A stretch of 63,385 nt of DNA, counting the filler, from Octopus bimaculoides (taxonomy: Eukaryota), in assembly GCF_001194135.2 (NCBI RefSeq). It is 5 parts of 4 records of this genome, joined end to end, with 100 filler letters (N's around TTAATTAATTAA, not from the genome) between each part and the next. Parts side by side here need not be neighbours in the genome. Positions count along the whole stretch, not along the records: positions 36,463 to 53,972 come from NC_068993.1; 4 more parts are not named here. The stretch is one strand, 5' to 3'. Positions 36,463 to 53,972 of the stretch are shown piece by piece. Position numbers and translations under genes: made by a program. The notes beneath the pieces were generated by a model. It was not told the origin of the DNA. It did not search any database and was given only the letters and a program-made list of their open reading frames with translations. The stretch's first letter is position 1, and each line of letters opens with the position of its first letter.

Positions 36463-36652
36463 ATATCACACTCATGTTAAGTGAGCGTGTGTGTGTGTGA
36501 GGATGTGTGTCTTCATGTGTGTAAGGAATTCTATTAGAGCGACAGAGTTGAAAGACCCTTACATAGCATCAGCAGTAAGCTAAGAAAAATCTTTACATGT
36601 CTGCATCAAACAGAAAAGCAAAAACTTAGTTTATCAATATATAATACATTTA

Positions 36653-37375
36653 GTGAGAGCTGTACGAGCCATGTACAGGGATGCTGTAGGTAAGGTGAGG
36701 GTTGGCAACAAGTACAGTGAGGAATTCCGGGTAGAGGTAGGGGTCCACCAAGGTTCAGTCCTCGGCCCCCTCCTCTTTATCATGGTCCTCCAGGCGATAA
36801 CAGAGGAATTCAGGACAGGATACCCCTGGGAGCTCCTCTATGCTGATGACCTTGCACTAATCGCTGAGTCACTATCAGAACTAGAGGAGAGGCTTCAGGT
36901 GTGGAAGCAAGGATTATAATCGAAGGGCCTTGGAGTCAACCTAGCTAAAGCCAAAGTCCTAATATGTAGGAAGGTAGACAAAACACAAACCCCTTCAGGT
37001 AGATGGCCCTGCTCGATCTGTAGCAAAGGCGTAGGTAGAAACTCTATAAGATGCACCCAGTGCAAGCTATGGACACATAATAGGTGCTGCAATATCAAGG
37101 GAAGGTTAACTAGGAAGTTAGTTTTTGTATGTGGCAGATGTTCAGGAGCAATAAACACTGAAAATGTGCAGATAGCAACTTCTGCCACATGCCGGTGGCA
37201 CGTAAAAGCACCCGCTACACTCTCGGAGTGGTTGGCGTTAGGAAGGGCATCCAGCTGTAGAAACTCTGCCAAATCAGATTGGAGCCTGGTGTAGCTATCT
37301 GGTTCACCAGTCATCGGTCAAATCGTCCAACCCATGCTAACATGGAAAGCGGACGTTAAACGATGATGATGATGA
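36653..37375 (+). mobile_element. RTE-clade LINE, RT fragment joined directly to 3' UTR (internal deletion)
   Basis: GVHQGSVLGPLLF...LLYADDLAL; same family as 30491-32316. Confidence 0.9.
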
Positions 37376-37829
37376 AGATTGCTCCAAATAATGCAGACAT
37401 CTGTCCTGATTGAGAGGCCTACCCACCAGAGAAGACATGTATGTGCGTGGATCAGTGGTTAGAGTGTCGGGCTCACAATTATGAGATAATGATTTTGATT
37501 CCTGGGTAGAGATGTGTGTTGTGTTCTTGAGCAAGATACTTTATTGTTCAAGTTCACTCAGCTGTAGAAATGAGTTGTGACATCACTGGTGCCAAGCTGT
37601 ATCAGCCTTTGCCTTTCCTTTGGATAAGATCTGTGATGTGAAGAGGGAAGGTTGGTATGCATGGGCAACTGCTGGTCTTCCATAANNNNNNNNNNCTAGC
37701 ATGGAAAGCGGACGTTAAACGATGATGATGATATATATATAATATGGCTACCAAAAGTATCAGACATCAATGGAGAATGAAGTGTGTGCTGGGTTACGAT
37801 GAGCAAATAAAGTGAGTCCACAGCTGTAA

Positions 37830-38300
37830 CCTACACCAGTGTCACATAACCAGCCCACTCAAAAGTACCTTGATCATAGGGCGACATGCTGTGCTTGAGG
37901 AGACCGATTGAGTCAAGTACATCAGCATCAGCAATATCAAAATCAAAATCAAATGGAAATTGTAGTTGTGAGTCCCATGCCGGTAGCATGTAAAAAGCAC
38001 TATCTGAACGTGGCCGATGCCAGTGCTGCCTTGATTGGCTTCCATTCCGGTAGCACATAAAAAGCACCATCCGACTGCTGTCGATGCCAGCTCCTCTGGC
38101 CCCTTGTGCCAGTGGCACACAAAAAGCACCCATTACACTCTCGGAGTGGTTGGCGTTAGGAAGGGCAATCTAGCTGTAGAAACACTGCCAGATCAGATTG
38201 GGGCCTGGTACAGCCTCCTGGTTTCCCAGACCCCAGTTGAACTGTCCAACCCATGCCAACATGGAAAACGGACGTTAAATGATGATGATGATGATGATTT
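37830..38300 (+). mobile_element. RTE LINE 3' UTR fragment
   Basis: Ends ccaacccatgccaacatggaaaacggacgttaaat(gat)n as in 32316. Confidence 0.8.
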
Positions 38301-38813
38301 TAACTCCAAGCTGTCATGCATCCTCACTTACCAAAACTGAGAAAAATGAAAATATAATTATATTTAATATGAGTGCAGGTGTAGCTGTGTGGTAAGTTTG
38401 CTTCCCAACCACATGGTACCTTGGGCAAGTGACTTCTACTATAGCCCCTGGCTAAACAAAGCCTGGAGTGGATTTGGTAGAGGGGAACTGAACAAAAAAA
38501 TCATTGTAGGTATATATGTGTACATGTGAGTGTGTGTGTGTGGGTGAAAGAGAGAGAATGTGTATATGTTTGTGTCTTGTTTTGCCATCACATGATTGTT
38601 ATACAAACAGTGTCATTCATTTTCAATATACTAAGAGAACATGTCTGGCCATGGGGAAATATTATCTTGTTTGGAAACAAGTGGGGGTTGGTGACAAAAA
38701 GGGCATCCAGCTGTAGAAAATCTGCCTCAATAAACTCCACCCAACTCATGCAAGCATGGAAAAGTGAACTTTAAAAATGATAATAATGATGTATAAACAA
38801 ATGAATTTCTTAC

Positions 38814-38980
38814 TTGGTTTTGATGCATTCAGTTTAATCTGTGTTATTTGTTGATACTTGGTCTCCTTATATGTGTAGTGGACTTTGAACTCTAAATGAA
38901 GTGATATGGTCAAGACTATCTCATCTCTGCTTAAATTCATCGAGGTCAGTGATTTTTGTAAGGAAGTACATTTCCTTGCT
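38814..38980 (-). CDS. Class I cytokine receptor-like gene, coding exon 4 (ARKCTSLQKSLTSMNLSRDEIVLTISLHLEFKVHYTYKETKYQQITQIKLNASKP): second half of the cytokine-binding FN3 domain
   Basis: gccattgcag acceptor, A|gtaaga donor, phase 2 to 1 in frame with exon 3. Confidence 0.72.
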
Positions 38981-41509
38981 CTGCAATGGCAACAGACATA
39001 CAACACATAAGGACATTGTAAACTTGTAATTACTATGATACAATACTACTATTTTAATTAGCAAATGTCATATGTTTTTTAGAGAAGAGAGAGCAAAATT
39101 GAGCCTTTGTTATTGAATCTAGTAGCAAATGGGATATAAATCGGCTCCAGGTAGAAATAAAACAATATCAGTCTGTATGAAAAAACAAACAAAAAATTTC
39201 ACCATTATCCCCATCACCACAGCACCACTAGCAACATAATCTCCTTCCTTCATTTAGGTAACACTGATCAAACTGATTCCACTATTTAACTATAAGAATG
39301 TTTATAAACACTTAAACTAGGAATTATTAAAAGAAATATTAGAAACTATTAATATTAAAGCAGAAGTGAAGAAAAAACAGACTATAGGTTAATGTCTGGG
39401 CCTTTGAAAAAAAGTCACTGCTAAGCAGTCATTGGATAAAATTTGGAAGTTTCTTTTGCTTCCAAAACTGTACACATCTTTCACCCAATCAGCAAAGATA
39501 TTTGTTTCTTCATTGATACTTCTGATAGTCTTTCAAAACTTTTCATAGTTCCAATTGTTTTATTTTCATCTGAATAAAAACTAGACAGTAAGTAAACAAC
39601 ACCAGATGTCTACTACATTTTGTTTATTGATTATAACTATTATGTCATTAGATATTTCTGTGTCATGATATGGGTCTGCCCAAATCCTAAACCTAAACAG
39701 AAATGCAGTACCTGCGATGAGCTTATAAACTTGTGACTTATTGATCAAGATATTGATATTTTCTTCATTTAACTATGAAAAAATATAGATAGAAGCTGTT
39801 TAATAACAGAACAGATTTATAAGTTCAATATCTTTACTCTTTCAAAGAGTCTAACACTTTAACCATCTTGTTACCCTATTTCTGTTGAATTACACTGGCT
39901 TTGTTTCAAAGAATGACTGGGTGGTTAAGAAAAATGTTTCACAACAACAAAGTTTCAGGTTCAGTCCCATTAGGTAGCAACTCCAGGCCAACAAATGCCT
40001 CGTGAGTGAATTTGGTATACAGAAACTGAGGAAGTCCATCGCGGGTGTTTGTGTGTATGTGTGTAGATCTTTGGGTTTGTCTCCTGCTCCTACTGGTATT
40101 AGTTTTTTTCTTATGTCCCTGTAACTTAGTGGCTCAGCAAAAACAAAAACCAAAGGAATAAGACACCAGAATTAAAAATAAATACTGGGATTGATTTTTT
40201 TAATAAAACCTTCAAGGTGCTATCCCAATGTGGTCACAGTTCAATAACTGAAACATATAAGGAGGTAGAGACCCCCTTTGGTCATGAATGACCATGCGAT
40301 TCCACCAAGAAAGTTCCTCTCTGAGGCACTAGTCCACGCAAGGTTGTTTATAGAAGATCACCAGTCACCCATGCATACCAGCCTCTCCTATCCATGCCAC
40401 TGATGTTATCTAAGGAAAGGCAAAGACCAATATAGCTTAGCACCAGTGACATTGCAACTCATTTCCACAGTCGAGTGAACTGGAGCAATGTGAAATAAAA
40501 TGTCTTACTCAAAAACACAACACTCAGCCTGGTCCAGCAATCGAACTCACTACCTCATGATTGTGAGTCCAATGCTCTAACCACTGAGCCATGTGCCTTC
40601 AAGAAGAAGAAATAGAATTTATCAAAATAACCATCATAATTTAGTTGGTGTTTAGAACACAAATTAAAATGAAATTTTGATTGAAGGTTTGTAATTTAAA
40701 CCAGTTTTAAATGGGGATTTTGTATCACAAAAGTGGGGTAGTTTCAAGATGGTCTTTTTATCAGAAGACTAAAGCAACCTTTAAAAACATGGATAAAATT
40801 GAAACATCAATGGCTTGAAATCCCATTTTCTATTTTATTGCAAGCATGATGAACGGTAAGAAGTTTGCTTCCCAATCACACAGTTTCAGATTCAGTCCCA
40901 CTGCATGGCACCTTGGGCTAAGTGTTTTCTATTGTGTGGGGGTGCTGAAAAGTTCCTGGCTTTGGTTAAAAGAAAATAAAGGATGATCATTTAATTATGA
41001 TTTTATTCAACATATTCCCCTCTCAGTTTCACATACTTATTGCAGTGGTCCTTCAGTTTTTCTAAGCCCTGTAAAATAATCTGGAAGGCTGGACTTCAGT
41101 AAGGGTTTTCATGATACCCTTAAAACCAGGAACTTTTCCCAGGCTGACCAAACCCTTGTAAGTGAATTTATTTGATGGAAACTGAAAGAAGCTTGTCATA
41201 TATATGTGTATGCATGTGTGTGCGTGTGCATGTATGTGTATGTGTACCAAATTTATTCACAGGATATTTTAAAAGATATTGGTTGACCCAGGGCTATAAT
41301 AGAAGATATTTGCCTATGGTGCTGTAGGACGGGAGTGGTCTCAAAAACATGATTAGAAAGTGAACTGCTTAACCACAGATGCACAAAATTGTACAATATG
41401 TACAATATAAAACAGACTTATCTAGATACATATACAAACATATATAAATACATGAATACATTTATCGCACAAATATACAGATAGACAGGCAGACAAATAT
41501 TTTACTTAC

Positions 41510-41648
41510 CTCTTATAAGACCAGCAAAAATCAACACCAACATTTTCCATATAATTGTATTTCTGTCCTAGACTCCATGAACAATTCAGAATTTGCCAGT
41601 CAAATACAATACACTTTATGGAATCCTTAGGAATTGGTACAAGTTTTT
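41510..41648 (-). CDS. Class I cytokine receptor-like gene, coding exon 3 (KLVPIPKDSIKCIVFDWQILNCSWSLGQKYNYMENVGVDFCWSYK)
   Basis: Long poly-T acceptor, AG|gtaagt donor, phase 1 to 2; C-x9-C-x-W signature of the cytokine-binding module; too short for the ORF track. Confidence 0.85.
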
Positions 41649-41822
41649 CTGGTTAAAAAAAAAAAGAAGAAAAAAAAACAAAGATAAATATCACCAGTAA
41701 AAAAACAGGCTTAACTGAAAAGAAATAAGACAAAACAAATACATAAGTATATACACACACACACACATATATATAAACATGTATACATACATATGTATAT
41801 ATATACATACATATATGTATAT

Positions 41823-42070
41823 GTGGAGGCACGTGGCTTAGTGGTTAGGGTGTCAACACCATGATCATAAGATTGTGGTTTCGATTCGTGGACCGGGCGA
41901 CGTATTGTGTTCTTGAGCAAAACACTTTATTTCACGTTGCTCCAGTCCACTCAGCTGGCAAAAATGAGTAACGCTGCGATGGACTGGTGTCCCGTCCAGC
42001 TGGGGAACACATACGCCATTGAAACCAGGAAACCGGGCCCATGAGCCTGGCTAGGCTTTAAAAGAGCGCA
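41823..42070 (+). mobile_element. SINE family B (young-looking copy)
   Basis: A-box gtggcttagtggttag and B-box-like gtttcgattc; body shared with 16890, 37440, 40260(-) and 47380(-). Confidence 0.8.
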
Positions 42071-42110
42071 TTTATTTATTTTATATGTATACACACACAC
42101 ACACACACAC

Positions 42111-42870
42111 AAGGTGTGATCAAAAAGTGTCCGACCTTTGGCCAAAAAAAAAAACAAGTAATATTAAAAAACTAACCATTTGTATTTGTTTTGGGAGTTT
42201 ATGCACTTCTGCCAGCATTCCTGCTACTACTGGAAACATTTCTGGAAATCACTTTTTGGGATATCGTAGAGCTGTGCTGTCAGATTTTGCCTAATGTCTT
42301 CTGCTGACTCAAATCTTCTCCCTATGAGTGCTTTTTTAAGCTTTGGGAATAGCCAAATGTCACACAGAGCCAAGTCTGGGGAGTAGGAAGCCTGATGAAC
42401 AAATGGTATGTTTTGCTTGACAAGGAATGCTTGGATGACGTGGGTAGAATGAGTAGGTGCGTTGCCATGGTGGAGTTGCTAGTTCTTTGCTGCCTACAGG
42501 CTGGGTTGTTTTCACTGCACAGCTTCACAAAGGCAACAAAGAACCTTTGCAATCATTTCATCATTTCTACTAGTCAATGGTCTGTCACAACGTGGCTCAC
42601 TATCCACTGAGGAGCAGCCATCTTTGAACCAGTTGTACCATTCCTTTGTGTTTTTCCCATAGCATCATCTCAAAAGGGCTTCTGAATCTTCTCGATAGTT
42701 CGGGCTTGTGTGTCACCAATTTTTTGGCAGAATTTGATACAACATCTTTGCCCAATGTGCTTGGTCATCTTGACTCAAAAAGATAAATTGCACAACACAC
42801 TCTTCATATTTATACTCAACATGTCACTGTGGGCAAATGGTGCAATCTACAGACACGAAAATTTTTGCCT
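42111..42870 (-). mobile_element. Degenerate mariner transposon
   Basis: Minus-strand HLFIRLPTPQTWLCVTFGYSQSLKK with frameshift corresponds to the HPPYSPDLAPCDFWLFPKLK motif; terminus aggtgtgatcaaaaagt. Confidence 0.65.
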
Positions 42871-44658
42871 GTATCGGCCTTTGCATTTCCCTTAGATAAC
42901 ATCAGTGGCATGGAGAGGGGAGGCTGATCTGCATGGGTGACTGCTGGTCTTCCATAAACAACTTTACTTGGACCTCTGCCTCAAAGAGGAACTTTCTAGG
43001 TGGAATCCCATGGTCATTCATGACAGATGGGGGTCTTTACCCCACTTTACCAATTCTTTAACTATTTTCATATGTTAAAATGATAATGATGACAATGGTA
43101 ATATATACAACATGCATATATGTATATACACACATACATGTTATATACATATATATATATCATCACTTTGCTACCCACTCATTAGGCATATATATAAGAG
43201 ACTGCATAAGGCCATCCTCATCACTCTATATACCCTCTCATCTCTAAGTATATGTATAACAAACAGTACTGAACCATCTGTATGTATTACTATCAACTTT
43301 ACTTTATCTGTGCTGCCATCAATCACTTTCTCTCTTCCTTCTGGAGCATTTCTGTTGGGCATTCATCACCTACTCTTACTATGCCCACATCTGCTATTGA
43401 CCATCGCTCCCCTCACATCTTAATAACTGCTTCTACTCTTTTCCTCTTGCTCCTTTCACCCATCAATTCCGGCCTTCTGGCTTTCCTCTGTTCCTCCTCC
43501 TTGATTACATCACCTGAGAAGTACACAACTTAGGCTTCTCTCTACACTTACAGTATACAGAGCCATTCCATCCCAGCAAGCCCTCTAGAGTGATAGGTGG
43601 TTTAGAAGTAAAGAAGGATTGTGATGCTCTTTACTGCTGTTTCACTGAAAACTTGACAATTTCTCCATTACTAGTGCCATGCCACAACACACTATAAAGT
43701 GGATGACGAATAAGTTGAGAAAGCATAAAGCTCTGCAGTCTTTTTAGTCCTGTGCCACTGAGAGTTTTATTCACTGCTCTAATGATGGTGCCAAGAGAAA
43801 TTGCACCCAGTCATCATCATCATCATTTACTGTCCATTGTCCATTGTTGGCATGGGTTGGATGGTTTGACTGGGCTGGCTTGCTGGAAGGCTGCACTAGA
43901 CTCCAGCCTGATTTGGCATGGTTTTCTATGACTGGATGCTCTTCCTAACGCCTTTGCATGACATGGGGGTACATTTATGTGCAACTGGCATGGGTGTACC
44001 CACCCATGCCAGTGTAAAATAGTGATAATAAGGACATGCAACCATTAAAGCCAAGCGAAAATGACATATGTCAAGCCAAGTGAAATCGTAGTCATGGCTG
44101 ATGACAGTGTCACAGAACTGGCACCCATGTTGGTGGCACATAAAATGCACATTTCGATTGTTGGGCCTCACATAGGCAATGTGGCCAATGCCGGTGTCAT
44201 GTAACTAGTACCCATGCCTATGGCATGTCAAAAGCACCTTTCAAGTGTGGGATTTCACAGAAGCAATGACAAATGACTGAGACCGTTGGCAATATGCCGT
44301 GCTTGATTAGAAAACACATCAAACCAAGTGAAATTTGAGTCATGGCAGATAGCGGTGTCATGCAACTGGCACCCATGTTAGTGACACATAAAAGCACCCA
44401 TTACACTCTTGGAGTGGTTGGCATTAAGAAGGACATCCTGCCATAAAAATCTTGTCAAATCAGACTGGAGTCTGGTGCAGCCCTGGTCAAGCAGCCAACC
44501 TGTGCCAGCATACAAAACAGACATTAATTGATAATGATGAGCACTAATCTATAGGAAAATGTAGCCTCCAATAAGAAATGACTCTAAGCACAATGAATCT
44601 TCTAGCCTTGAATATGAAATAATGACTATGATGATATATACAAAAACATGATACTTGC

Positions 44659-44904
44659 CTTCAACTTTAACCCATTGGCCAGCATGTACTTGAGCGTTTG
44701 AATATTTACACACAAAGCTGCCTTCCTCTTTACTACTATTGTAGCATTTCTTCAAAGAAGCACTTGTCTTGTTGAATGTTGTTTCATTTTGAGAAGAATT
44801 GGTAAAATACAGTGCTGAAGTGTCATTCAAAGTTGTGGAATTTAGTTTACAAGTAAATGTAATGCAATCTCCAACAAAGACAAATGGATCATTTGGTTCC
44901 AAAA
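44659..44904 (-). CDS. Class I cytokine receptor-like gene, coding exon 2: Ig-like domain (LEPNDPFVFVGDCITFTCKL...GSFVCKY...WVKVE)
   Basis: ttttctatttctttag acceptor; phase 1-1 exon of 246 nt; TFTC and GSFVC Ig cysteines; six N-x-S/T sequons; GC donor AAG|gcaagt. Confidence 0.85.
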
Positions 44905-45764
44905 CTAAAGAAATAGAAAATATGTCAATAAATTAATAAAACATGAAAAGTAGCCATTTCTTTGAGAATACAGAAAGTAACTTTTTCACAGAAGGTTTAC
45001 CCACTAACTGCTTGGGCAGCATAACAGCACATAGCAGTTTGGAGTATGCTTAGCACCGATCACCAATAAATAGAGCCGGAACCAACTGGACTTTATTGTT
45101 TTTTTTTTTTATTTTGTTATGTTCCACCTGTGATTATCCCAATCTTTAAAAGCAAATTGTTTTTACTTTTTTTTTTTTAAGCCAAATTTTTTCCTGCTGG
45201 TGTTGAAATACAAAAACTTAAAACTGAATATCAGCTGAATCAAGCATACCAGTTTTTGAGATCCTACAAAGGCCTTAGCCATGATACTGCATCCTCAAAT
45301 AAATTACAACAGCAGAAATTGATACCGGTGCTGGGGCCACGTTAAAAGTACTGATGCTGGTGCCACATAAAAAGCACCCAATACACTCTGTGGCATGGTT
45401 GGCATTAGGAAGGGCATCCAGTCATGGAAACAATGCTAGAACAGACAATGGAGCCTGGCCTTAACAGCATCAGTCAAACCATCCAAACCATGCCAGAGGT
45501 TAAATGATGAAGAGGATTTATAAATCACAAAGGAAAAACAAAATATTCAGTAATGGAGAGCAAGATGTAAGCTTTTGAAAGATCAAAACCATAATGTCAC
45601 AATACAGTAGTTCATCCCAGTGGAAAGGATTCCACTTCACTTATGCTGCTAATAAATGAGTAAACGTATATCCCAGTGTCACTTCATCATACCTTCTCTA
45701 AAACAATAAAGCCTTTGTCCCTGGTCTACTTATGTTATTCATAGACATGTGAACAAAACACATA

Positions 45765-45932
45765 CAGGCGCAGGAGTGGTTGTGTGGTAAGTAGCTTGCT
45801 TACCAACCACATGGTTCCGGGTTCAGTCCCACTGCATGGTACCTTGGGCAAGTGTCTTCTACTATAGCCTCGGGCCGACCAAAGTGAGTGGATTTGGTAG
45901 ACGGAAACTGAAAGAAGCCCGTCGTATATATG

Positions 45933-45966
<34 letters not shown>

Positions 45967-46185
45967 TATGTATATATGTGTGTTTGTGTTTGTCCCCCAC
46001 CATCGCTTGACAACTGATGCTGGTGTGTTTACGGCCCTGTAACTTAGTGGTTCGGCAAAAAGAGACCGATAGAATAAGTACTAGGCTTCCAAAGAATAAG
46101 TCCTGGGGTCGATTTGCTCGACTAAAAGGCGGTGCTCCAGCATGGCCGCAGTCAAATGACTGAAACAAGTAAAAGAGTAAAAGAG
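45765..46185 (+). mobile_element. SINE family A (near-intact copy)
   Basis: ggcgcaggagtggttgtgtggtaag head through aaatgactgaaacaagtaaaagag tail. Confidence 0.9.
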
Positions 46186-46351
46186 TATGTAAAACACTTC
46201 AGTGCCAAATCAATCGTGATTGAGTAGATCTGCACTGAAAGACATTCTGGCCATAGCCATGATATTTTTCTTTTCTTTTTTGCTGACATGAAATAAGAAG
46301 AAGAAGAAGAAGGAGGGCAAGAGGTAAAGGAGAAGAAGTGGCAGTACTTAC

Positions 46352-46412
46352 TTAATTTATCATAGCTATTAGTCACTGGGAGAAACAGGAGCAAGACTGA
46401 TAGAATCAACAT
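46352..46412 (-). CDS. Class I cytokine receptor-like gene, coding exon 1: signal peptide (MLILSVLLLFLPVTNS-YDKL)
   Basis: Hydrophobic signal peptide; A|gtaagt phase-1 donor in frame with the Ig exon; strong acceptor ctttctcttttcatgaccacag 8 nt upstream of the ATG. Confidence 0.78.
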
Positions 46413-46549
46413 ATTCAAAGCTGTGGTCATGAAAAGAGAAAGACAGAAAAAGACATTTAAGAAAAATAAAACTTCAAAAGGTGAAGAAAAAAAAGGCCAT
46501 AACATTTACTGTGATTATATTTAATTAAAAAGTATCTTTCCTATTTTTT

Positions 46550-47328
46550 TTATTTGTTTCAGTAATTGGATTGTGGCCATGCTGGGGCATTGCCTTGAAG
46601 GATTTAACCAAACAAACTGACCCCATAGCTTATTCTTTTAAAGTCTTGTACATATTTTATCAGTCTCTATTGCTGAACCTCTAAGTTACAGGCATGTAAA
46701 CAAACCAACACCAATTGTAAAGTGGCAGGGGAACACATACACATGCATGCATGTGTGTATGTATGTGTATGCATGTATGTATGTATGTGTATGTATGTAT
46801 GACAGGCTTCTTTCAGTTTCTTCTCTACCAAACTCACTCACAAAATCTTGTTCAGGTAATAGCTATAGTAAAAGATAGTTGTCCAAGGTGCCACGCAGCA
46901 GGACTGAACCTAAAACCATGTGGTTAAGAAGTGGTTAAGAACAGCCATGCCTGCACCTACATTTATAATGGAGTAGTATTTGTGCCAAAATAGTGCACTG
47001 TCTTGAAGGATCTATCAAACACATCAATCCTAGTATTTATATATTTTTTAAAGTCTGGTAATTATTCTATCAGTCTCTTTTGCCAAACCATTAAACAACA
47101 GCTATGTAAACAAACCAACACCGGTTGTCAAGTGGTGTGAGGACAAACACAAATTCACATACATATGACAGGCTTCTACACAGTTTCCATCTACCAAATT
47201 TGTTCACAAGGCATTGGTCATCCCAGAGCTATAGTAGAAGATACTTCTCCAAGGTAACACATAGTGGGAGTGAACCAAAAACCAGGTGGTTGCAAAACAA
47301 ACTTATTAACCACACAGTTATGTCTCCA

Positions 47329-47330
<2 letters not shown>
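46550..47330 (-). mobile_element. Two adjacent degenerate SINE family A copies
   Basis: Reverse-complement matches to family A. Confidence 0.7.
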
Positions 47331-47371
<41 letters not shown>

Positions 47372-47659
47372 GATGATGATGATGGACTCTCCTACCGAAG
47401 ATGACGTATGAGTGTTCAGCTTGTGCTGAATGACCTGCACAAGTGATTTGTTTATATTGACCAAATGTTCACACTGCACATTAGCTCAACGTTGCCTGAA
47501 CAGGTGCATGGAATGTAGCACACGTCACGTGTTGAAGTGATCACAGAGCAACATGAGATGAAGTGTTTTGCTCAAGAACACAATGCACCACTTAGTCTAG
47601 GAATTGAAACCACGATCTCACAATCATGAGTGCAACACCCTAACCACTAGGCCATGTGC

Positions 47660-47690
<31 letters not shown>

Positions 47691-47986
47691 TGCACTGGGG
47701 GAAAATGTGACTGAGATAAGGTCTGGGGCAAGAATATGGTCTTACAAGTCGTGAAATGAGATACTTTTGAATGTTTTCTTTTCTATTTTTTACTGCTTCA
47801 TCAGAAGAAGGAACACATGACTGTTTGCGGGGTTATCTAACAGGAAACCTGACACAAGTGTTTGCTACAGAGAGGGCTATTTTAAAGCCACTTTTAGGTC
47901 AAGTGGTGTTACAAAACCAGTTGACATATTAAGCCTACCATCCAGAAATACATATATACATACCATACATACATGTACAGTATGCA

Positions 47987-48017
<31 letters not shown>

Positions 48018-48019
48018 CA

Positions 48020-48271
48020 TCATCATCGTTTAACGTCCGCTTTCCATGCTAGCATGGGTTGGACGATTTGACTGAGGACTGGTGAAACCAGATGCCTACA
48101 CCAGGCTCCAATCTGATTTGGCAGAGTTTCTACAGCTGGATGCCCTTCCTAACGCCAACCACTCAGAGAGTGTAGTGGGTGCTTTTACGTGTCACCCGCA
48201 CGAAGGCCAGTCAGGCAGTACTGGCAACGGCTACGCTCAAAATGGTGTATTTTATGTGCCACCCACACAAG
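48020..48271 (-). mobile_element. RTE LINE 3' end
   Basis: Near-identical to 36125-36362; reverse complement of the RTE tail. Confidence 0.85.
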
Positions 48272-49836
48272 NNNNNNNNNNNNNNNNNNNNNNNNNNNNN
48301 NNNNNNNNNNNNNNNNNNNNNNNNNNNNNNNNNNNNNNNNNNNNNNNNNNNNNNNNNNNNNNNNNNNNNNNNNNNNNNNNNNNNNNNNNNNNNNNNNNNN
48401 NNNNNNNNNNNNNNNNNNNNNNNNNNNNNNNNNNNNNNNNNNNNNNNNNNNNNNNNNNNNNNNNNNNNNNNNNNNNNNNNNNNNNNNNNNNNNNNNNNNN
48501 NNNNNNNNNNNNNNNNNNNNNNNNNNNNNNNNNNNNNNNNNNNNNNNNNNNNNNNNNNNNNNNNNNNNNNNNNNNNNNNNNNNNNNNNNNNNNNNNNNNN
48601 NNNNNNNNNNNNNNNNNNNNNNNNNNNNNNNNNNNNNNNNNNNNNNNNNNNNNNNNNNNNNNNNNNNNNNNNNNNNNNNNNNNNNNNNNNNNNNNNNNNN
48701 NNNNNNNNNNNNNNNNNNNNNNNNNNNNNNNNNNNNNNNNNNNNNNNNNNNNNNNNNNNNNNNNNNNNNNNNNNNNNNNNNNNNNNNNNNNNNNNNNNNN
48801 NNNNNNNNNNNNNNNNNNNNNNNNNNNNNNNNNNNNNNNNNNNNNNNNNNNNNNNNNNNNNNNNNNNNNNNNNNNNNNNNNNNNNNNNNNNNNNNNNNNN
48901 NNNNNNNNNNNNNNNNNNNNNNNNNNNNNNNNNNNNNNNNNNNNNNNNNNNNNNNNNNNNNNNNNNNNNNNNNNNNNNNNNNNNNNNNNNNNNNNNNNNN
49001 NNNNNNNNNNNNNNNNNNNNNNNNNNNNNNNNNNNNNNNNNNNNNNNNNNNNNNNNNNNNNNNNNNNNNNNNNNNNNNNNNNNNNNNNNNNNNNNNNNNN
49101 NNNNNNNNNNNNNNNNNNNNNNNNNNNNNNNNNNNNNNNNNNNNNNNNNNNNNNNNNNNNNNNTAATACTGGTTCCCATATGCTATTCATATCTGCACTC
49201 GGATTGCTTAGGAGGTTGTTGTGTTCTAGCATATGTGCTGCCCCTTTCAGTTTTACACACACACACACTCGATAATAGAGACTCATAAAATACACTTTCA
49301 CACACACACACACATACATTATCTAACTCGTACATGCAAACACACAGTGACACAACTATTGTACTTCCAAATATTTACGTATGCACATATATCTTGCATG
49401 TATGTAACAAACCATCTACATATGTACACTTGAGAAAAAGATTCACTGTCATGCACACACATAATAAATAATATATAAGAGGATGATGAAGAATAAAATT
49501 ATATAATGCCTTGCTTTTATCTTGCTGGATAATAGATAAGTGGTACTGAGTTGAATTACTGCAATAGATACAAACCCTTTGCATGTTTAACTGTCCATGA
49601 TACTTGGTTTATTAGAAGCAGAATGAATCTTTGAAGGGCTGGGCTTTGATTTGTGTGTATATTTTAAAACTTCCAAGTTGTTTCCAGGATAATGTAAAAG
49701 TATTATCTACAAAAAAAATCAAGCATAAAAATATCCATATAAGTACAAATATACTTTCAGAAATAAATATAAATTACAAGCAATAATAAATCTCTGAATG
49801 AGGTATAAACAGTAGCAGCACGACAACGTGAAGTAT

Positions 49837-50198
49837 ATTTGCCACTTAAATGTGGCTAACCCCTAAGGGTGAATGCTACTGTAGCTTGTAGCCCCAGGAG
49901 AACATCTCCTCCAGCTGGCTATTGACACACTTTCTGTGCCCTGTCGGTATTTGCAAAGGGAAATCATCCTTCCCATCGTCGATCTGACGTGATACGCACA
50001 GACCCAGAAGGGTAAATACCCAGAAACCTGGGTCCGTGCGTATCACGTCAGGTCGACGATGGGAAGGATGACTTCTCTTTGCAAATACCGACAGGGCACA
50101 GAAAGTGTGTCAATAGCCAGGTGGAGGAGATGTTCTCCTGGGGCTACAAGCTACTGTAGCATTCACCCTTAGGGGTTAGCCGCATTTAAGTGGCAAAT
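49837..50198. mobile_element. Fold-back element/MITE: ~170-bp inverted arms with ~20-nt loop
   Basis: atttgccacttaaatgtggctaacc...gacccag / ctgggtc...ggttagccgcatttaagtggcaaat; about 7 mismatches counted by eye. Confidence 0.9.
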
Positions 50199-50452
50199 GT
50201 AAATTATAAGTTATACCATATTTACTGCAAACATGTACATTCAAAAGGAGCATTTAAGGGTAGGTTCTTCCTTTCTATTTCTCAGCATGAAGTGGATAAG
50301 AGATAAATCCCATCAAAACAGGCCCAATTGAAATGTTCCATATATTTGTCTATTACGTATAAGTTATGTCCTGGTTTCCTATTTTACACATGTTTGTATT
50401 TATGTGTGTACTGCAGACTTGTGGAGATATATTTCTATGTGTATTATATTTC

Positions 50453-50637
50453 AAAATTATGAATGGAAAAAATTATGAATGAAAAAATTAGGAAAGAAAA
50501 AATTATTAAGAATAAAAGGTTAAACTTTATATATATATAAAGTTTAACTTTATATATATATAAAGTTTAACCTTTTATTCTTAATAATTTTTTCTTTCCT
50601 AATTTTTTCATTCATAATTTTTTCCATTCATAATTTT
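50453..50637. repeat. Very AT-rich palindrome with doubled centre
   Basis: aaaattatgaatgg...aaggttaaacttt(at)n... mirrored by ...aaagtttaacctt...ccattcataatttt. Confidence 0.85.
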
Positions 50638-51699
50638 TTCATTCATATTTTTTTATTATTACGTTTGTAGAAATAAATAATCTTGTATTTTTCTATTATT
50701 CAATTGATCTTTAATCATAATTAAATAAACGTCTTTAGCTTTAAATAGTATAGCTTTAACTATTACACCGGTTAAATATGTACTAATTTTATCTTCATTA
50801 TTATTTTAAACTTAAACTTNNNNNNNNNNNNNNNNNNNNNNNNNNNNNNNNNNNNNNNNNNNNNNNNNNNNNNNNNNNNNNNNNNNNNNNNNNNNNNNNN
50901 NNNNNNNNNNNNNNNNNNNNNNNNNNNNNNNNNNNNNNNNNNNNNNNNNNNNNNNNNNNNNNNNNNNNNNNNNNNNNNNNNNNNNNNNNNNNNNNNNNNN
51001 NNNNNNNNNNNNNNNNNNNNNNNNNNNNNNNNNNNNNNNNNNNNNNNNNNNNNNNNNNNNNNNNNNNNNNNNNNNNNNNNNNNNNNNNNNNNNNNNNNNN
51101 NNNNNNNNNNNNNNNNNNNNNNNNNNNNNNNNNNNNNNNNNNNNNNNNNNNNNNNNNNNNNNNNNNNNNNNNNNNNNNNNNNNNNNNNNNNNNNNNNNNN
51201 NNNNNNNNNNNNNNNNNNNNNNNNNNNNNNNNNNNNNNNNNNNNNNNNNNNNNNNNNNNNNNNNNNNNNNNNNNNNNNNNNNNNNNNNNNNNNNNNNNNN
51301 NNNNNNNNNNNNNNNNNNNNNNNNNNNNNNNNNNNNNNNNNNNNNNNNNNNNNNNNNNNNNNNNNNNNNNNNNNNNNNNNNNNNNNNNNNNNNNNNNNNN
51401 NNNNNNNNNNNNNNNNNNNNNNNNNNNNNNNNNNNNNNNNNNNNNNNNNNNNNNNNNNNNNNTGTGTGTGTGTGTGTGTATGTTTGTGTGTCTGTGTTTG
51501 TCCCCCCCACCATTGCTTGACAACCGATGCTGGTGTGTTTACGGCCCCGTAACTTAGTGGTTTGGTAAAAAGAGACCGATAGAATAAGTACTAGGCTTAC
51601 AAAGAGTAAGTCCTGGGGTCGATTTGCTCGACTAAAGGTGGTGCTCCAGCATGGCCGCAGTCAAAAATGACTGAAACAAGTAAAAGAGTAAAAGAGTAT

Positions 51700-51890
51700 A
51701 AAGAAGATTTGGCAAGTCATCTTGATACAGCTTCTGTTTTCTGATTCCTCAAACAGAATTCAAAATGACTTGATCCATGTAGTTGAAAAAGTTACATTAA
51801 ATGAAATAGAAAATGAAGTAGATTAAATTTATAGCTACGTCTGCAGATGAAATGTCTACTTTATTGAACAATTCACAACTGTAAACTGTT
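51700..51890 (+). mobile_element. Degenerate hAT-type transposase fragment
   Basis: IQNDLI...FIATSADEMST resembles the IQNELI...FSILADETTD region of hAT/ZMYM1-like transposases. Confidence 0.35.
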
Positions 51891-51944
51891 TTGCATTGTG
51901 TTACTAAAGAACTATTTACCAGTTTTAATGATGTTAGTGCAATC

Positions 51945-52571
51945 TCAGGACAGAGCAATCTGACTGATAAAAATCAAACATCCAGTCAAAATCATGGTGT
52001 TTGGAGTGATCACTAGTGATGGTGATGTTATGCCATCTTCCCACACAGCCTCAGACTCAACATGGAAGCCAACATCAAGTACCTGGAGGAGGTAATGCTG
52101 TCCTGGGTCAAGAGGGTGTCTACTGGAAGACTCTAAACCTGGCAATAGGACTCTGCACCATGCCACACAAGCAGGATAACCCAGTCATGGCCATCAGACA
52201 ATTTCTGCAGCCACATCACCCCTAACATCTGACCACCTAACTCCCCAGACTGCAACCTCCTTGATTATTATGTGTGGGGTGCAGTTGAGCGAGAGACCAA
52301 CAAAACTCCTAACACCAAAGATAAACTGAAGGCAAAGATTATAGCAGCATTCTCTAACTTAAACAAGGAGAGCGACCACAAGAGTTGCAGGAGATCCTGA
52401 AATCGTCTGGTGGATGCGGTTGAAGCCAATAGCGATTTTGTTGAATAAATTTACTCTTTTGTATTTCAAGATATTTTTATGTAATTTTGGTAAATATGTC
52501 TGTTAAAATGAGATGTTGGTATTATTTTCGCTTTTGCATAATTTAAATGACAGTTTATTCACAGCACCCTG

Positions 52572-52573
<2 letters not shown>
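51945..52573 (+). mobile_element. Tc1/mariner (maT, DD37D-like) 3' half with terminal repeat
   Basis: KHPVKIMVFGVITSDGDVMP, QQDSAPCH-like and PPNSPDCNxLDYYVWGAVERETNK motifs with frameshifts; ends cacagcaccctgta. Confidence 0.8.
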
Positions 52574-52666
<93 letters not shown>

Positions 52667-53589
52667 AAAATATGTGCAAATATGCTTGTGGACATATAAT
52701 GTCTCTGCATGCTTATATATGCATGTATCTGTTAGTATGTGTGTGTGCATATACAATATGAGAAGCTATATGCATGTATATATGCGTGTGTATCTGTTTG
52801 TAAATTTATATCATTGCTATTATGTTAAACTGTCGTATGTCCAAATTGACCGAATGCAGTTTTGTCAATATTATTTTTGCTTGCAATAGCCAGTTCTTTT
52901 GGTCCAACAACTATCATATCCCCAGCTGCTTCATATGTCATGATATCAAAAATTGTCAAAGTGTAATACAACAGTTTTGCTATGGAATGGTGAAACTATT
53001 TTTTCGTTTTCTGAAAAAGCAACACTTTGGACTTACAACACTTTTGCATAATAAGAACAATATATATTTATGCACGAGAGTATGTGTGTGTGTGTGTGTA
53101 AGTATATATTTATATATGACTGTTTGTATGCATATATGTTTATGTTCACATGTCTAAGACTATTTCTCTATGTACTCCTTTTATTTGTTCTAACTTATAT
53201 TTTGTTTGTTTATATTTATCTATAATGCTTTATGACTTCTGAAAATGTCAGACTATTTCTGTTGCAAGACTTAGTCTGAAAATTTGTGTAATATAAGCTT
53301 TTTTTTTTATGTATACTTTTTAAAAGCACTCACTTTATACAACTCTTTAAATATGAACAAGACTTCCCATCTCTTATCTATCTACTTCTTTTCAGTTTCA
53401 AACATGGAAGTAACTATGAATATTTATCATTATATACAGTTGCAAGTTTTTCATAACACTTATGATTATGTAATTTATAAAGAATGACAAAAGATGACCA
53501 TCCCCAGATATAACAGGAGTTTCAACACATGATTTCACATTTAGAATCTTAAAAGTACATAAACTTATGTTAAACTTATTTTATGTAAT

Positions 53590-53972
53590 TACTAGCAGAG
53601 ATACCCGGCATTGCCCGTGTTACATGCAATTGAAAAATGAGACTTTTCTGTTATATTTTCTGTAAGGAACTGGAATACATATGATTCGAATTTCATCAAA
53701 ATTGCACATGAGGGTTCTTTCCCTCTTTACACACTCTAAAGAAATTCTAATCATGAGACATGTATCCCATACTATTGATCTTTATGCGCATATTCCAAAA
53801 TTTCAGTCTTCTGGAACCTGTGAAAAAGATTTTGCTCCTGCAAAATGGAGCTCATGGAGCTCTAAAATGTGGGAATGAAGGCCCCTATTGGGGGTGGGGG
53901 TGTTAATGTCAACCAGAGAAGTTGAATTGTTGGGAATGTTTTTACTTGGGTCTTATAGTATGCCTGTATATA
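53590..53972 (+). mobile_element. Possible non-autonomous Helitron-like element
   Basis: Starts actagcagagatacccggcattgccc, resembling Helitron-family non-autonomous termini. Confidence 0.35.

Follow-up and report, generated by a model that had tools for sequence, protein, structure and literature searches.

The class I cytokine receptor gp130 (IL6ST) is built from an immunoglobulin (Ig) domain, a two-domain cytokine-binding module (CBM; domains D1 and D2) and three fibronectin type III (FN3) domains, in this order, followed by one transmembrane (TM) helix and a kinase-less tail. Among invertebrates, the Drosophila protein Domeless is reportedly a receptor of CBM and FN3 domains with an incomplete WSxWS motif (Brown et al. 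2001, cited in PMC13203501 and PMC12284397); it is not known to have an N-terminal Ig domain, and any likeness drawn to it below is by description, not by sequence. Molluscan gp130/IL6R-like receptors with a signal peptide, Ig domain, IL6R domain, FN3 domains and TM segment were surveyed in 2026 (PMC13203501), and our literature search found no described cephalopod Domeless or gp130 receptor. We analysed a 63,385-nt stretch of Octopus bimaculoides DNA (the window, filler letters included), one piece of which (36463-53972) holds the promoter-proximal part of the gene LOC106880493, that is, its first four coding exons, which encode the signal peptide, the Ig domain and D1, the latter in two half-exons. 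Judged from sequence, LOC106880493 is most probably a gp130/Domeless-type class I receptor gene, and its product is predicted to be a type I membrane glycoprotein with a six-domain ectodomain.

The piece matches chromosome CM046613.1 at 100% identity on the reverse strand (positions 2441-19950 of L001, the GCA_001194135.2 contig CM046613.1:17859432-17902090 that encodes LOC106880493) and stops exactly at a 1007-N assembly gap. Reading the minus strand at 38700-46600, with exon boundaries set by script, gave the four exons and the phases (1, 1-1, 1-2 and 2-1) that a preliminary description of this DNA had proposed (Table 1; slashes mark splice junctions). The spliced product of 204 aa is identical to residues 1-204 of XP_052828325.1 (UniProt A0A0L8FXU5; O. 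bimaculoides, 393 aa), which carries the labels "uncharacterized protein LOC106880493" and "Fibronectin type-III domain-containing protein"; the gene presented in that description as recovered was thus already annotated in RefSeq and UniProt. The product starts with MLILSVLLLFLPVTNS, continues with an Ig-like domain showing the usual G-x-F-x-C motif and with KCIVFDWQILNCSW, and has nine N-glycosylation sequons. Exon 1 encodes the start codon and the signal peptide (MLILSVLLLFLPVTNS/YDKL, identical to residues 1-20 of XP_052828325.1), exon 2 the N-terminal Ig-like domain (four cysteines, six of the sequons) and exon 3 the first half of D1, with C115-x9-C125-S-W and Cys144. Exon 4 encodes the second half, with Cys153, and ends in ...LNASKP just before the D1-D2 linker. 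The proposed order of signal peptide, Ig domain and C-x9-C-x-W domain was correct, as was the remark that exon 3 is missing from the mechanical list of open reading frames (ORFs): it is missing because it has no early start codon, the sole in-frame one lying 14 codons before the intronic stop.

Intron 2 opens with a GC donor of full consensus, which is also used in Octopus vulgaris (L002 12358-15569), and no GT donor giving the phase required by exon 3 was found near the end of exon 2. A search for further exons on the minus strand at 36463-38813 found repeats only and no coding exon; none of the interspersed repeat families of the piece overlaps any exon, and ARAGORN and Rfam found nothing on the piece. 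At the 5' end, an in-frame upstream ATG would prepend 31 residues (MLWPFFSSPFEVLFFLNVFFCLSLFMTTALN) to the signal peptide, and the RefSeq and O. vulgaris models both start at 46412, not there; an intron of the 5' untranslated region may end at about 46422, with CCACAG/ as its candidate acceptor.

Querying a word-indexed protein collection with the spliced product returned no match, although the identical protein was in it. An exhaustive phmmer search with the exon 2 translation placed XP_052828325.1 (P0001) first at E = 1.9e-46 and a 947-aa protein of Argonauta hians (P0003) third, and a search with the latter led to an 822-aa O. vulgaris protein (P0057) that NCBI names "cytokine receptor isoform X1 [Octopus vulgaris]", a name that may derive from Domeless (UniProt name "Cytokine receptor"). 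P0057 is the orthologue: its gapless alignment with the O. bimaculoides protein (379 aa, residues 14-392) shows 87% identity, and exact mapping gave the same exon boundaries and phases in the two species, with all splice junctions conserved, the GC donor of intron 2 included. The ratio of nonsynonymous to synonymous substitution rates (dN/dS) between the two is 0.37 over 392 codons, 0.31 for exons 1-4 together and 0.14 for the Ig exon alone, indicating purifying selection, and all 11 exons identified in O. bimaculoides are free of stops and frameshifts. The identity of 204 aa to an independent RefSeq/UniProt model, the conserved junctions and the dN/dS values together put the exon observation far beyond chance. 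A profile search of a large protein collection with the three-sequence alignment added only one distant FN3 protein, from a spider. Short ORFs of 96-120 aa on ENA/Logan contigs (P0023, P0025) resemble the Ig exon (E about 5e-4), one cluster member turning up on 885 contigs; these ORFs may represent the Ig exon in other molluscs.

Behind its signal peptide, the encoded protein has an Ig domain, a two-domain CBM (D1, with two disulfides, and D2) and three FN3 domains, then one TM helix and ~200 aa of tail. This is the gp130 arrangement; it is complete in the O. vulgaris orthologue and partial in the O. bimaculoides chromosome. The introns fall in the order and phases SP/1/Ig/1/D1a/2/D1b/1/D2a/0/D2b/1/FN3-3a/0/FN3-3b/1/FN3-4a/0/FN3-4b/1/FN3-5a/1/FN3-5b/?/TM/2/../0/../0, in which the question mark stands for the unmapped junction after FN3-5b. 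In P0057, Pfam gave three fn3 matches, and a single hydrophobic segment within residues 591-620 (TM helix about 596-618) precedes a tail of 204 aa. TM segments occur in both the O. vulgaris and the Argonauta proteins, and O. bimaculoides has intact exons 10-12 leading towards the TM exon; with the signal peptide in window exon 1 and the one TM helix of the orthologue, the topology is single-pass type I. Besides the cysteine motif of D1, a second one, C-x8-C-x-W (CDKENHFRNCTW), lies outside the CBM in the fourth FN3-like domain (P0057 432-443, P0003 444-455).

Membership in the class I fold family, which the preliminary description had put forward, is well supported. Within the spliced 204 aa, LIFR_N (PF18207) was the sole Pfam family below E = 0.01, exon 2 reaching Ig_3 at E = 0.05 only; when D1 alone was compared with 24,736 Pfam families, LIFR_N was again best (E = 1.2e-4), TSLPR_D1 followed (E = 0.18) and no other family matched. 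The whole 204 aa gave only weak Ig and spurious matches in a phmmer search of the PDB, and D1 had to be split out. It then matched 13 PDB sequences, the first ten of which are LIFR (8d6a_B best), gamma-c, IL-31RA and gp130, each aligned at its own D1 start, and the LIFR alignment pairs all four D1 cysteines (C115-x9-C125-S-W, C144-x8-C153). As a control, reversed D1 matched one phage protein and no cytokine receptor in the PDB. A profile of the three octopod CBM sequences had gp130 in places 1-10 (best E = 3.5e-4), colinear with gp130 D2-D3 over profile positions 10-180, followed by gamma-c (0.004) and IL-31RA (0.011), and its reversal gave no PDB match at E<=10. The full-length octopod profile found IL-12Rβ2 (8odz_D) as its most significant receptor-specific match (E = 1.5e-6), in one colinear alignment of some 340 residues that starts in D2 and reaches the last FN3 domain.

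Structure prediction agrees with these searches. For the O. bimaculoides CBM, AlphaFold2 gave a model with a mean predicted local distance difference test score (pLDDT) of 70.5 (80-90 in D2), and the Foldseek comparison with the PDB, which had been suggested as a check, returned class I receptor CBMs at ranks 1-22 (E 4e-9 to 7e-8), among them gamma-c, gp130, TSLPR/IL-7Rα, IL-31RA and chains of the IL-27 complex; the first non-receptor, L1CAM, came at rank 23. An earlier model (379 aa, alignment of two sequences), to which we give little weight, had a pLDDT of 43, and Foldseek mixed cytokine receptors with generic Ig/FN3 proteins at a TM-score of about 0.2. Each CBM domain is split over two exons, and the intron phases of the module are 1-2-1-0-1 in both O. 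bimaculoides and O. vulgaris. Such phases are typical of class I as well as class II receptors. In the literature we found them stated for class II helical-cytokine receptors (PMC8863823) and found no such statement for class I, and splice structure is conserved from a Ciona gp130-like gene to vertebrate class I receptors (PMC1963337). A class II receptor was considered and ruled out, since the family and structure matches all fall in class I, whose pattern is C-x9-C-x-W.

Of the described receptors, gp130 shares with the octopus protein the ectodomain order, the one TM helix, the kinase-less tail and, in D1, C-x9-C-x-W with a second cysteine pair, but sequence identity is only about 15%. Aligned by eye, the third cysteine of octopus D1 stands closer to C-x-W than it presumably does in gp130, which is a lead rather than a test. 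LIFR D1 is the best Pfam and the best PDB match of octopus D1, with the four cysteines and C-S-W aligned, whereas LIFR has two CBMs and the octopus protein one. IL-12Rβ2, a chain of a vertebrate heterodimeric receptor, keeps WSNWS where the octopus has YSEPY. The Domeless CBM is a single exon (PMC1963337), in contrast to the octopus module, which is split as in Ciona and vertebrate gp130.

Several observations weigh against a gp130/Domeless-type receptor. No WSxWS was found in XP_052828325.1, P0057 or P0003; opposite the WSNWS of IL-12Rβ2 in D2, which lies outside the window, O. bimaculoides and O. vulgaris have YSEPY and Argonauta has LSKPY. The Box1 region reads KKFVDKIPFEYP in O. vulgaris and KKYADEIPIDIG in Argonauta with only "IP" in common, so that, set against the proline-rich consensus psi-x-x-x-psi-P-x-P, Box1 is cut down to KIPFEYP and EIPIDIG, respectively; the counterpart of IPFEYP in gp130 is one that we take to be IWPNVPDP. 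No YxxQ, the STAT-docking motif of Domeless and gp130 (a STAT3 site in the latter), was found in the O. vulgaris or Argonauta tails. The Pfam cytokine-receptor families all scored under their curated cut-offs (LIFR_N 22.7 bits, gathering cut-off 24.1), and the Argonauta protein lacks the second D1 disulfide pair. The CBM model was built on an alignment of three sequences only, and confidence in the structure is moderate for that reason, with D1 at a pLDDT of about 55-60 and TM-scores of 0.41-0.49. The checks proposed in the preliminary description thus came out divided: the TM helix was found (O. vulgaris, Argonauta), WSxWS was not, Box1 came down to one conserved proline, and Pfam named LIFR_N as the best family for D1 at a score short of the cut-off. 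Its receptor class is nonetheless borne out by the LIFR_N, gp130 and Foldseek matches and by the name of the orthologue.

Established members of the family, too, depart from WSxWS: growth hormone receptor carries YGEFS, and the motif of Domeless is incomplete. If the octopod protein works as a gp130/Domeless-type receptor, the Ig domain and the CBM elbow would bind a secreted ligand, ligand-driven dimerization would switch on a kinase, most likely the only JAK of molluscs, that sits on the membrane-proximal part of the tail, and this kinase would phosphorylate tail tyrosines to recruit STAT. Because the canonical WSxWS, Box1 and YxxQ are absent, we infer such coupling from the behaviour of the family and from the fact that molluscs have JAK and STAT (PMC13203501).

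The tails offer other candidate docking sites. Both share the motifs Y-[IL]-[KR]-A-[VF]-P-S and G/D-Y-V-x-[DN], which occur once in O. vulgaris, in a ~42-aa tyrosine unit (P0057 ~755-800), and in three tandem ~42-aa units with S-Y-L-K-A-[VF]-P-S and G-Y-V-[TI]-D-N in Argonauta (P0003 ~740-905), and to our knowledge fit no STAT-docking consensus. Such conserved motifs, together with the three missing ones, would suit a gp130-shaped Ig/FN3 surface receptor that lost JAK/STAT coupling or never had it, using other adaptors on its tyrosine motifs or serving in adhesion or as a co-receptor. The generic fn3 family is the only one to pass in Pfam, and among the PDB matches of the full-length profile the best individual E-value belongs to titin FN3 domains, which also suits an uncoupled receptor; however, the CBM-specific matches are gp130, gamma-c, IL-31RA and IL-12Rβ2, not adhesion proteins, WSxWS deviates in growth hormone receptor and Domeless too, and a KK-x-x-D-x-I-P stretch occupies the Box1 position of gp130, which leaves the uncoupled receptor unlikely. 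There is likewise a small chance that the octopod receptor combines a true class I CBM ectodomain with rewired signalling parts, having no WSxWS, a vestigial Box1, no YxxQ and a tyrosine module peculiar to the lineage (Y-[IL]-[KR]-A-[VF]-P-S ... G-Y-V-x-D-N) and tandemly amplified in Argonauta.

The 393-aa database protein has a signal peptide and no TM segment, as would a secreted, soluble decoy like CRLF1, which the preliminary description had allowed for. The model ends in ...DKSKG and a stop (DNA TCA AAA G/GT TAG) that arises in the intron, two codons beyond the donor AAG/GTTAGC, from which O. vulgaris splices to exon 9 and which is read through in O. bimaculoides. A 100-N gap opens 270 nt downstream of the model end (region L001 32654-33029), and a second annotated gene model begins 84 nt past the first, the gene being split into two models. 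This gap (L001 32930-33029) hides exon 9 alone (aa 393-438, expected to read about VPDYP...HFRN), and exons 10-12, which encode later FN3 domains, follow with 78-81% amino-acid identity to the orthologue, in which FN3-4, FN3-5, the TM helix and the tail are complete. Because the conserved donor is read through, the gap adjoins and exons 10-12 follow intact, the 393-aa product is read from the sequence as an annotation truncation at the assembly gap and not a soluble receptor; a minor read-through isoform may exist, and a secreted decoy is very unlikely given the TM helix of the orthologue and the conserved downstream exons. It is extremely unlikely that the locus is a decaying duplicate matched by a gene model that is no more than a computational prediction: although the model for O. 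bimaculoides is incomplete, frames are open and all splice sites conserved in two species, and the dN/dS values and the lack of stops and frameshifts in 11 exons speak against decay.

Table 1. Exons and introns of LOC106880493 and other elements around them. Positions are those of the window except where L001 is named; SINE, short interspersed element.
Feature	Position	Strand	Details
Coding exon 1	46412-46352	-	61 nt; ATG with A at -3; donor TAA/GTAAGT; end phase 1
Intron 1	44905-46351	-	1447 nt, GT-AG; microsatellites and SINE-like repeats inside
Coding exon 2	44904-44659	-	246 nt; acceptor TTTCTTTAG/; donor AAG/GCAAGT; phase 1-1
Intron 2	41649-44658	-	3010 nt, GC-AG; donor AAG/GCAAGT; transposon and SINE debris
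Coding exon 3	41648-41510	-	139 nt; poly-T acceptor AACCAG/; donor GAG/GTAAGT; phase 1-2
Intron 3	38981-41509	-	2529 nt, GT-AG
Coding exon 4	38980-38814	-	167 nt; acceptor TTGCAG/; donor CAA/GTAAGA; phase 2-1
Intron 4, first 2351 nt	36463-38813	-	6549 nt in chromosome
Exon 10	L001 33172-33354		open frame
Exon 11	L001 34890-35060		open frame
Exon 12	L001 39998-40147		open frame
In-frame upstream ATG	46413-46505	-	ATG at 46505
ORF matching Pfam RVT_1	36653-36919	+	intron 4, antisense; 88 aa; E = 1e-8, profile positions 106-175
SINE-like repeat, direct	37446-37545, 41832-41931		~100 nt
SINE-like repeat, inverted	40494-40591, 47546-47660		~100 nt
Second repeat family	37188-37380, 38122-38299, 38686-38726, 44365-44481, 45391-45446, 48016-48211		at least six copies, both orientations; introns 1, 2 and 4 and upstream of gene
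Broken transposase-like ORFs	42227-42760	-	intron 2
Foldback element	49834-50201		174-nt arms, 95% complementary, 20 nt apart; about 3.5 kb upstream of start codon
AT-rich palindrome	50453-50637		92-nt arms, 100% complementary, 1-nt spacer; 180 nt from 643-N gap

Around the exons lie repeats of several kinds. The antisense ORF in intron 4 is a fragment of a retroelement reverse transcriptase. The SINE-like repeat opens with a tRNA-like head (…GTGGTTAGAG…GGTTCGATTC-like boxes), in which ARAGORN found no tRNA and Rfam nothing, and the second repeat family translates to ...FLQLDALPNANHSESV... The broken ORFs of intron 2 (...CDIWLFPKLKKALIGRRFESAEDIRQNLTAQLYDIPKSDFQKCFQ) bear what we take to be a resemblance to the C-terminal end of a mariner-type transposase; Pfam assigned no family to the transposase-like ORFs in this intron or upstream of the gene. 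For the AT-rich palindrome, both a true hairpin and an artefact of the assembly are conceivable.

The find itself is ordinary and already known, because the gene model is in RefSeq and UniProt, the orthologue is named "cytokine receptor" and molluscan receptors have been surveyed (PMC13203501). For the O. bimaculoides entry, "gp130/Domeless-like class I cytokine receptor" can take the place of the labels "uncharacterized" and "Fibronectin type-III domain-containing", and its length of 393 aa can be read as an artefact of the 100-N gap, which also divides the gene between two models. What interest remains concerns the divergent signalling motifs and the identity of the ligand: should the signalling parts prove to be rewired, the docking code, and perhaps the ligand class, would be undescribed for any cytokine receptor. 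With no ligand known and without the customary WSxWS, Box1 and YxxQ motifs, these cephalopod receptors would be a reasonable entry point into how JAK/STAT signalling is triggered in lophotrochozoans.

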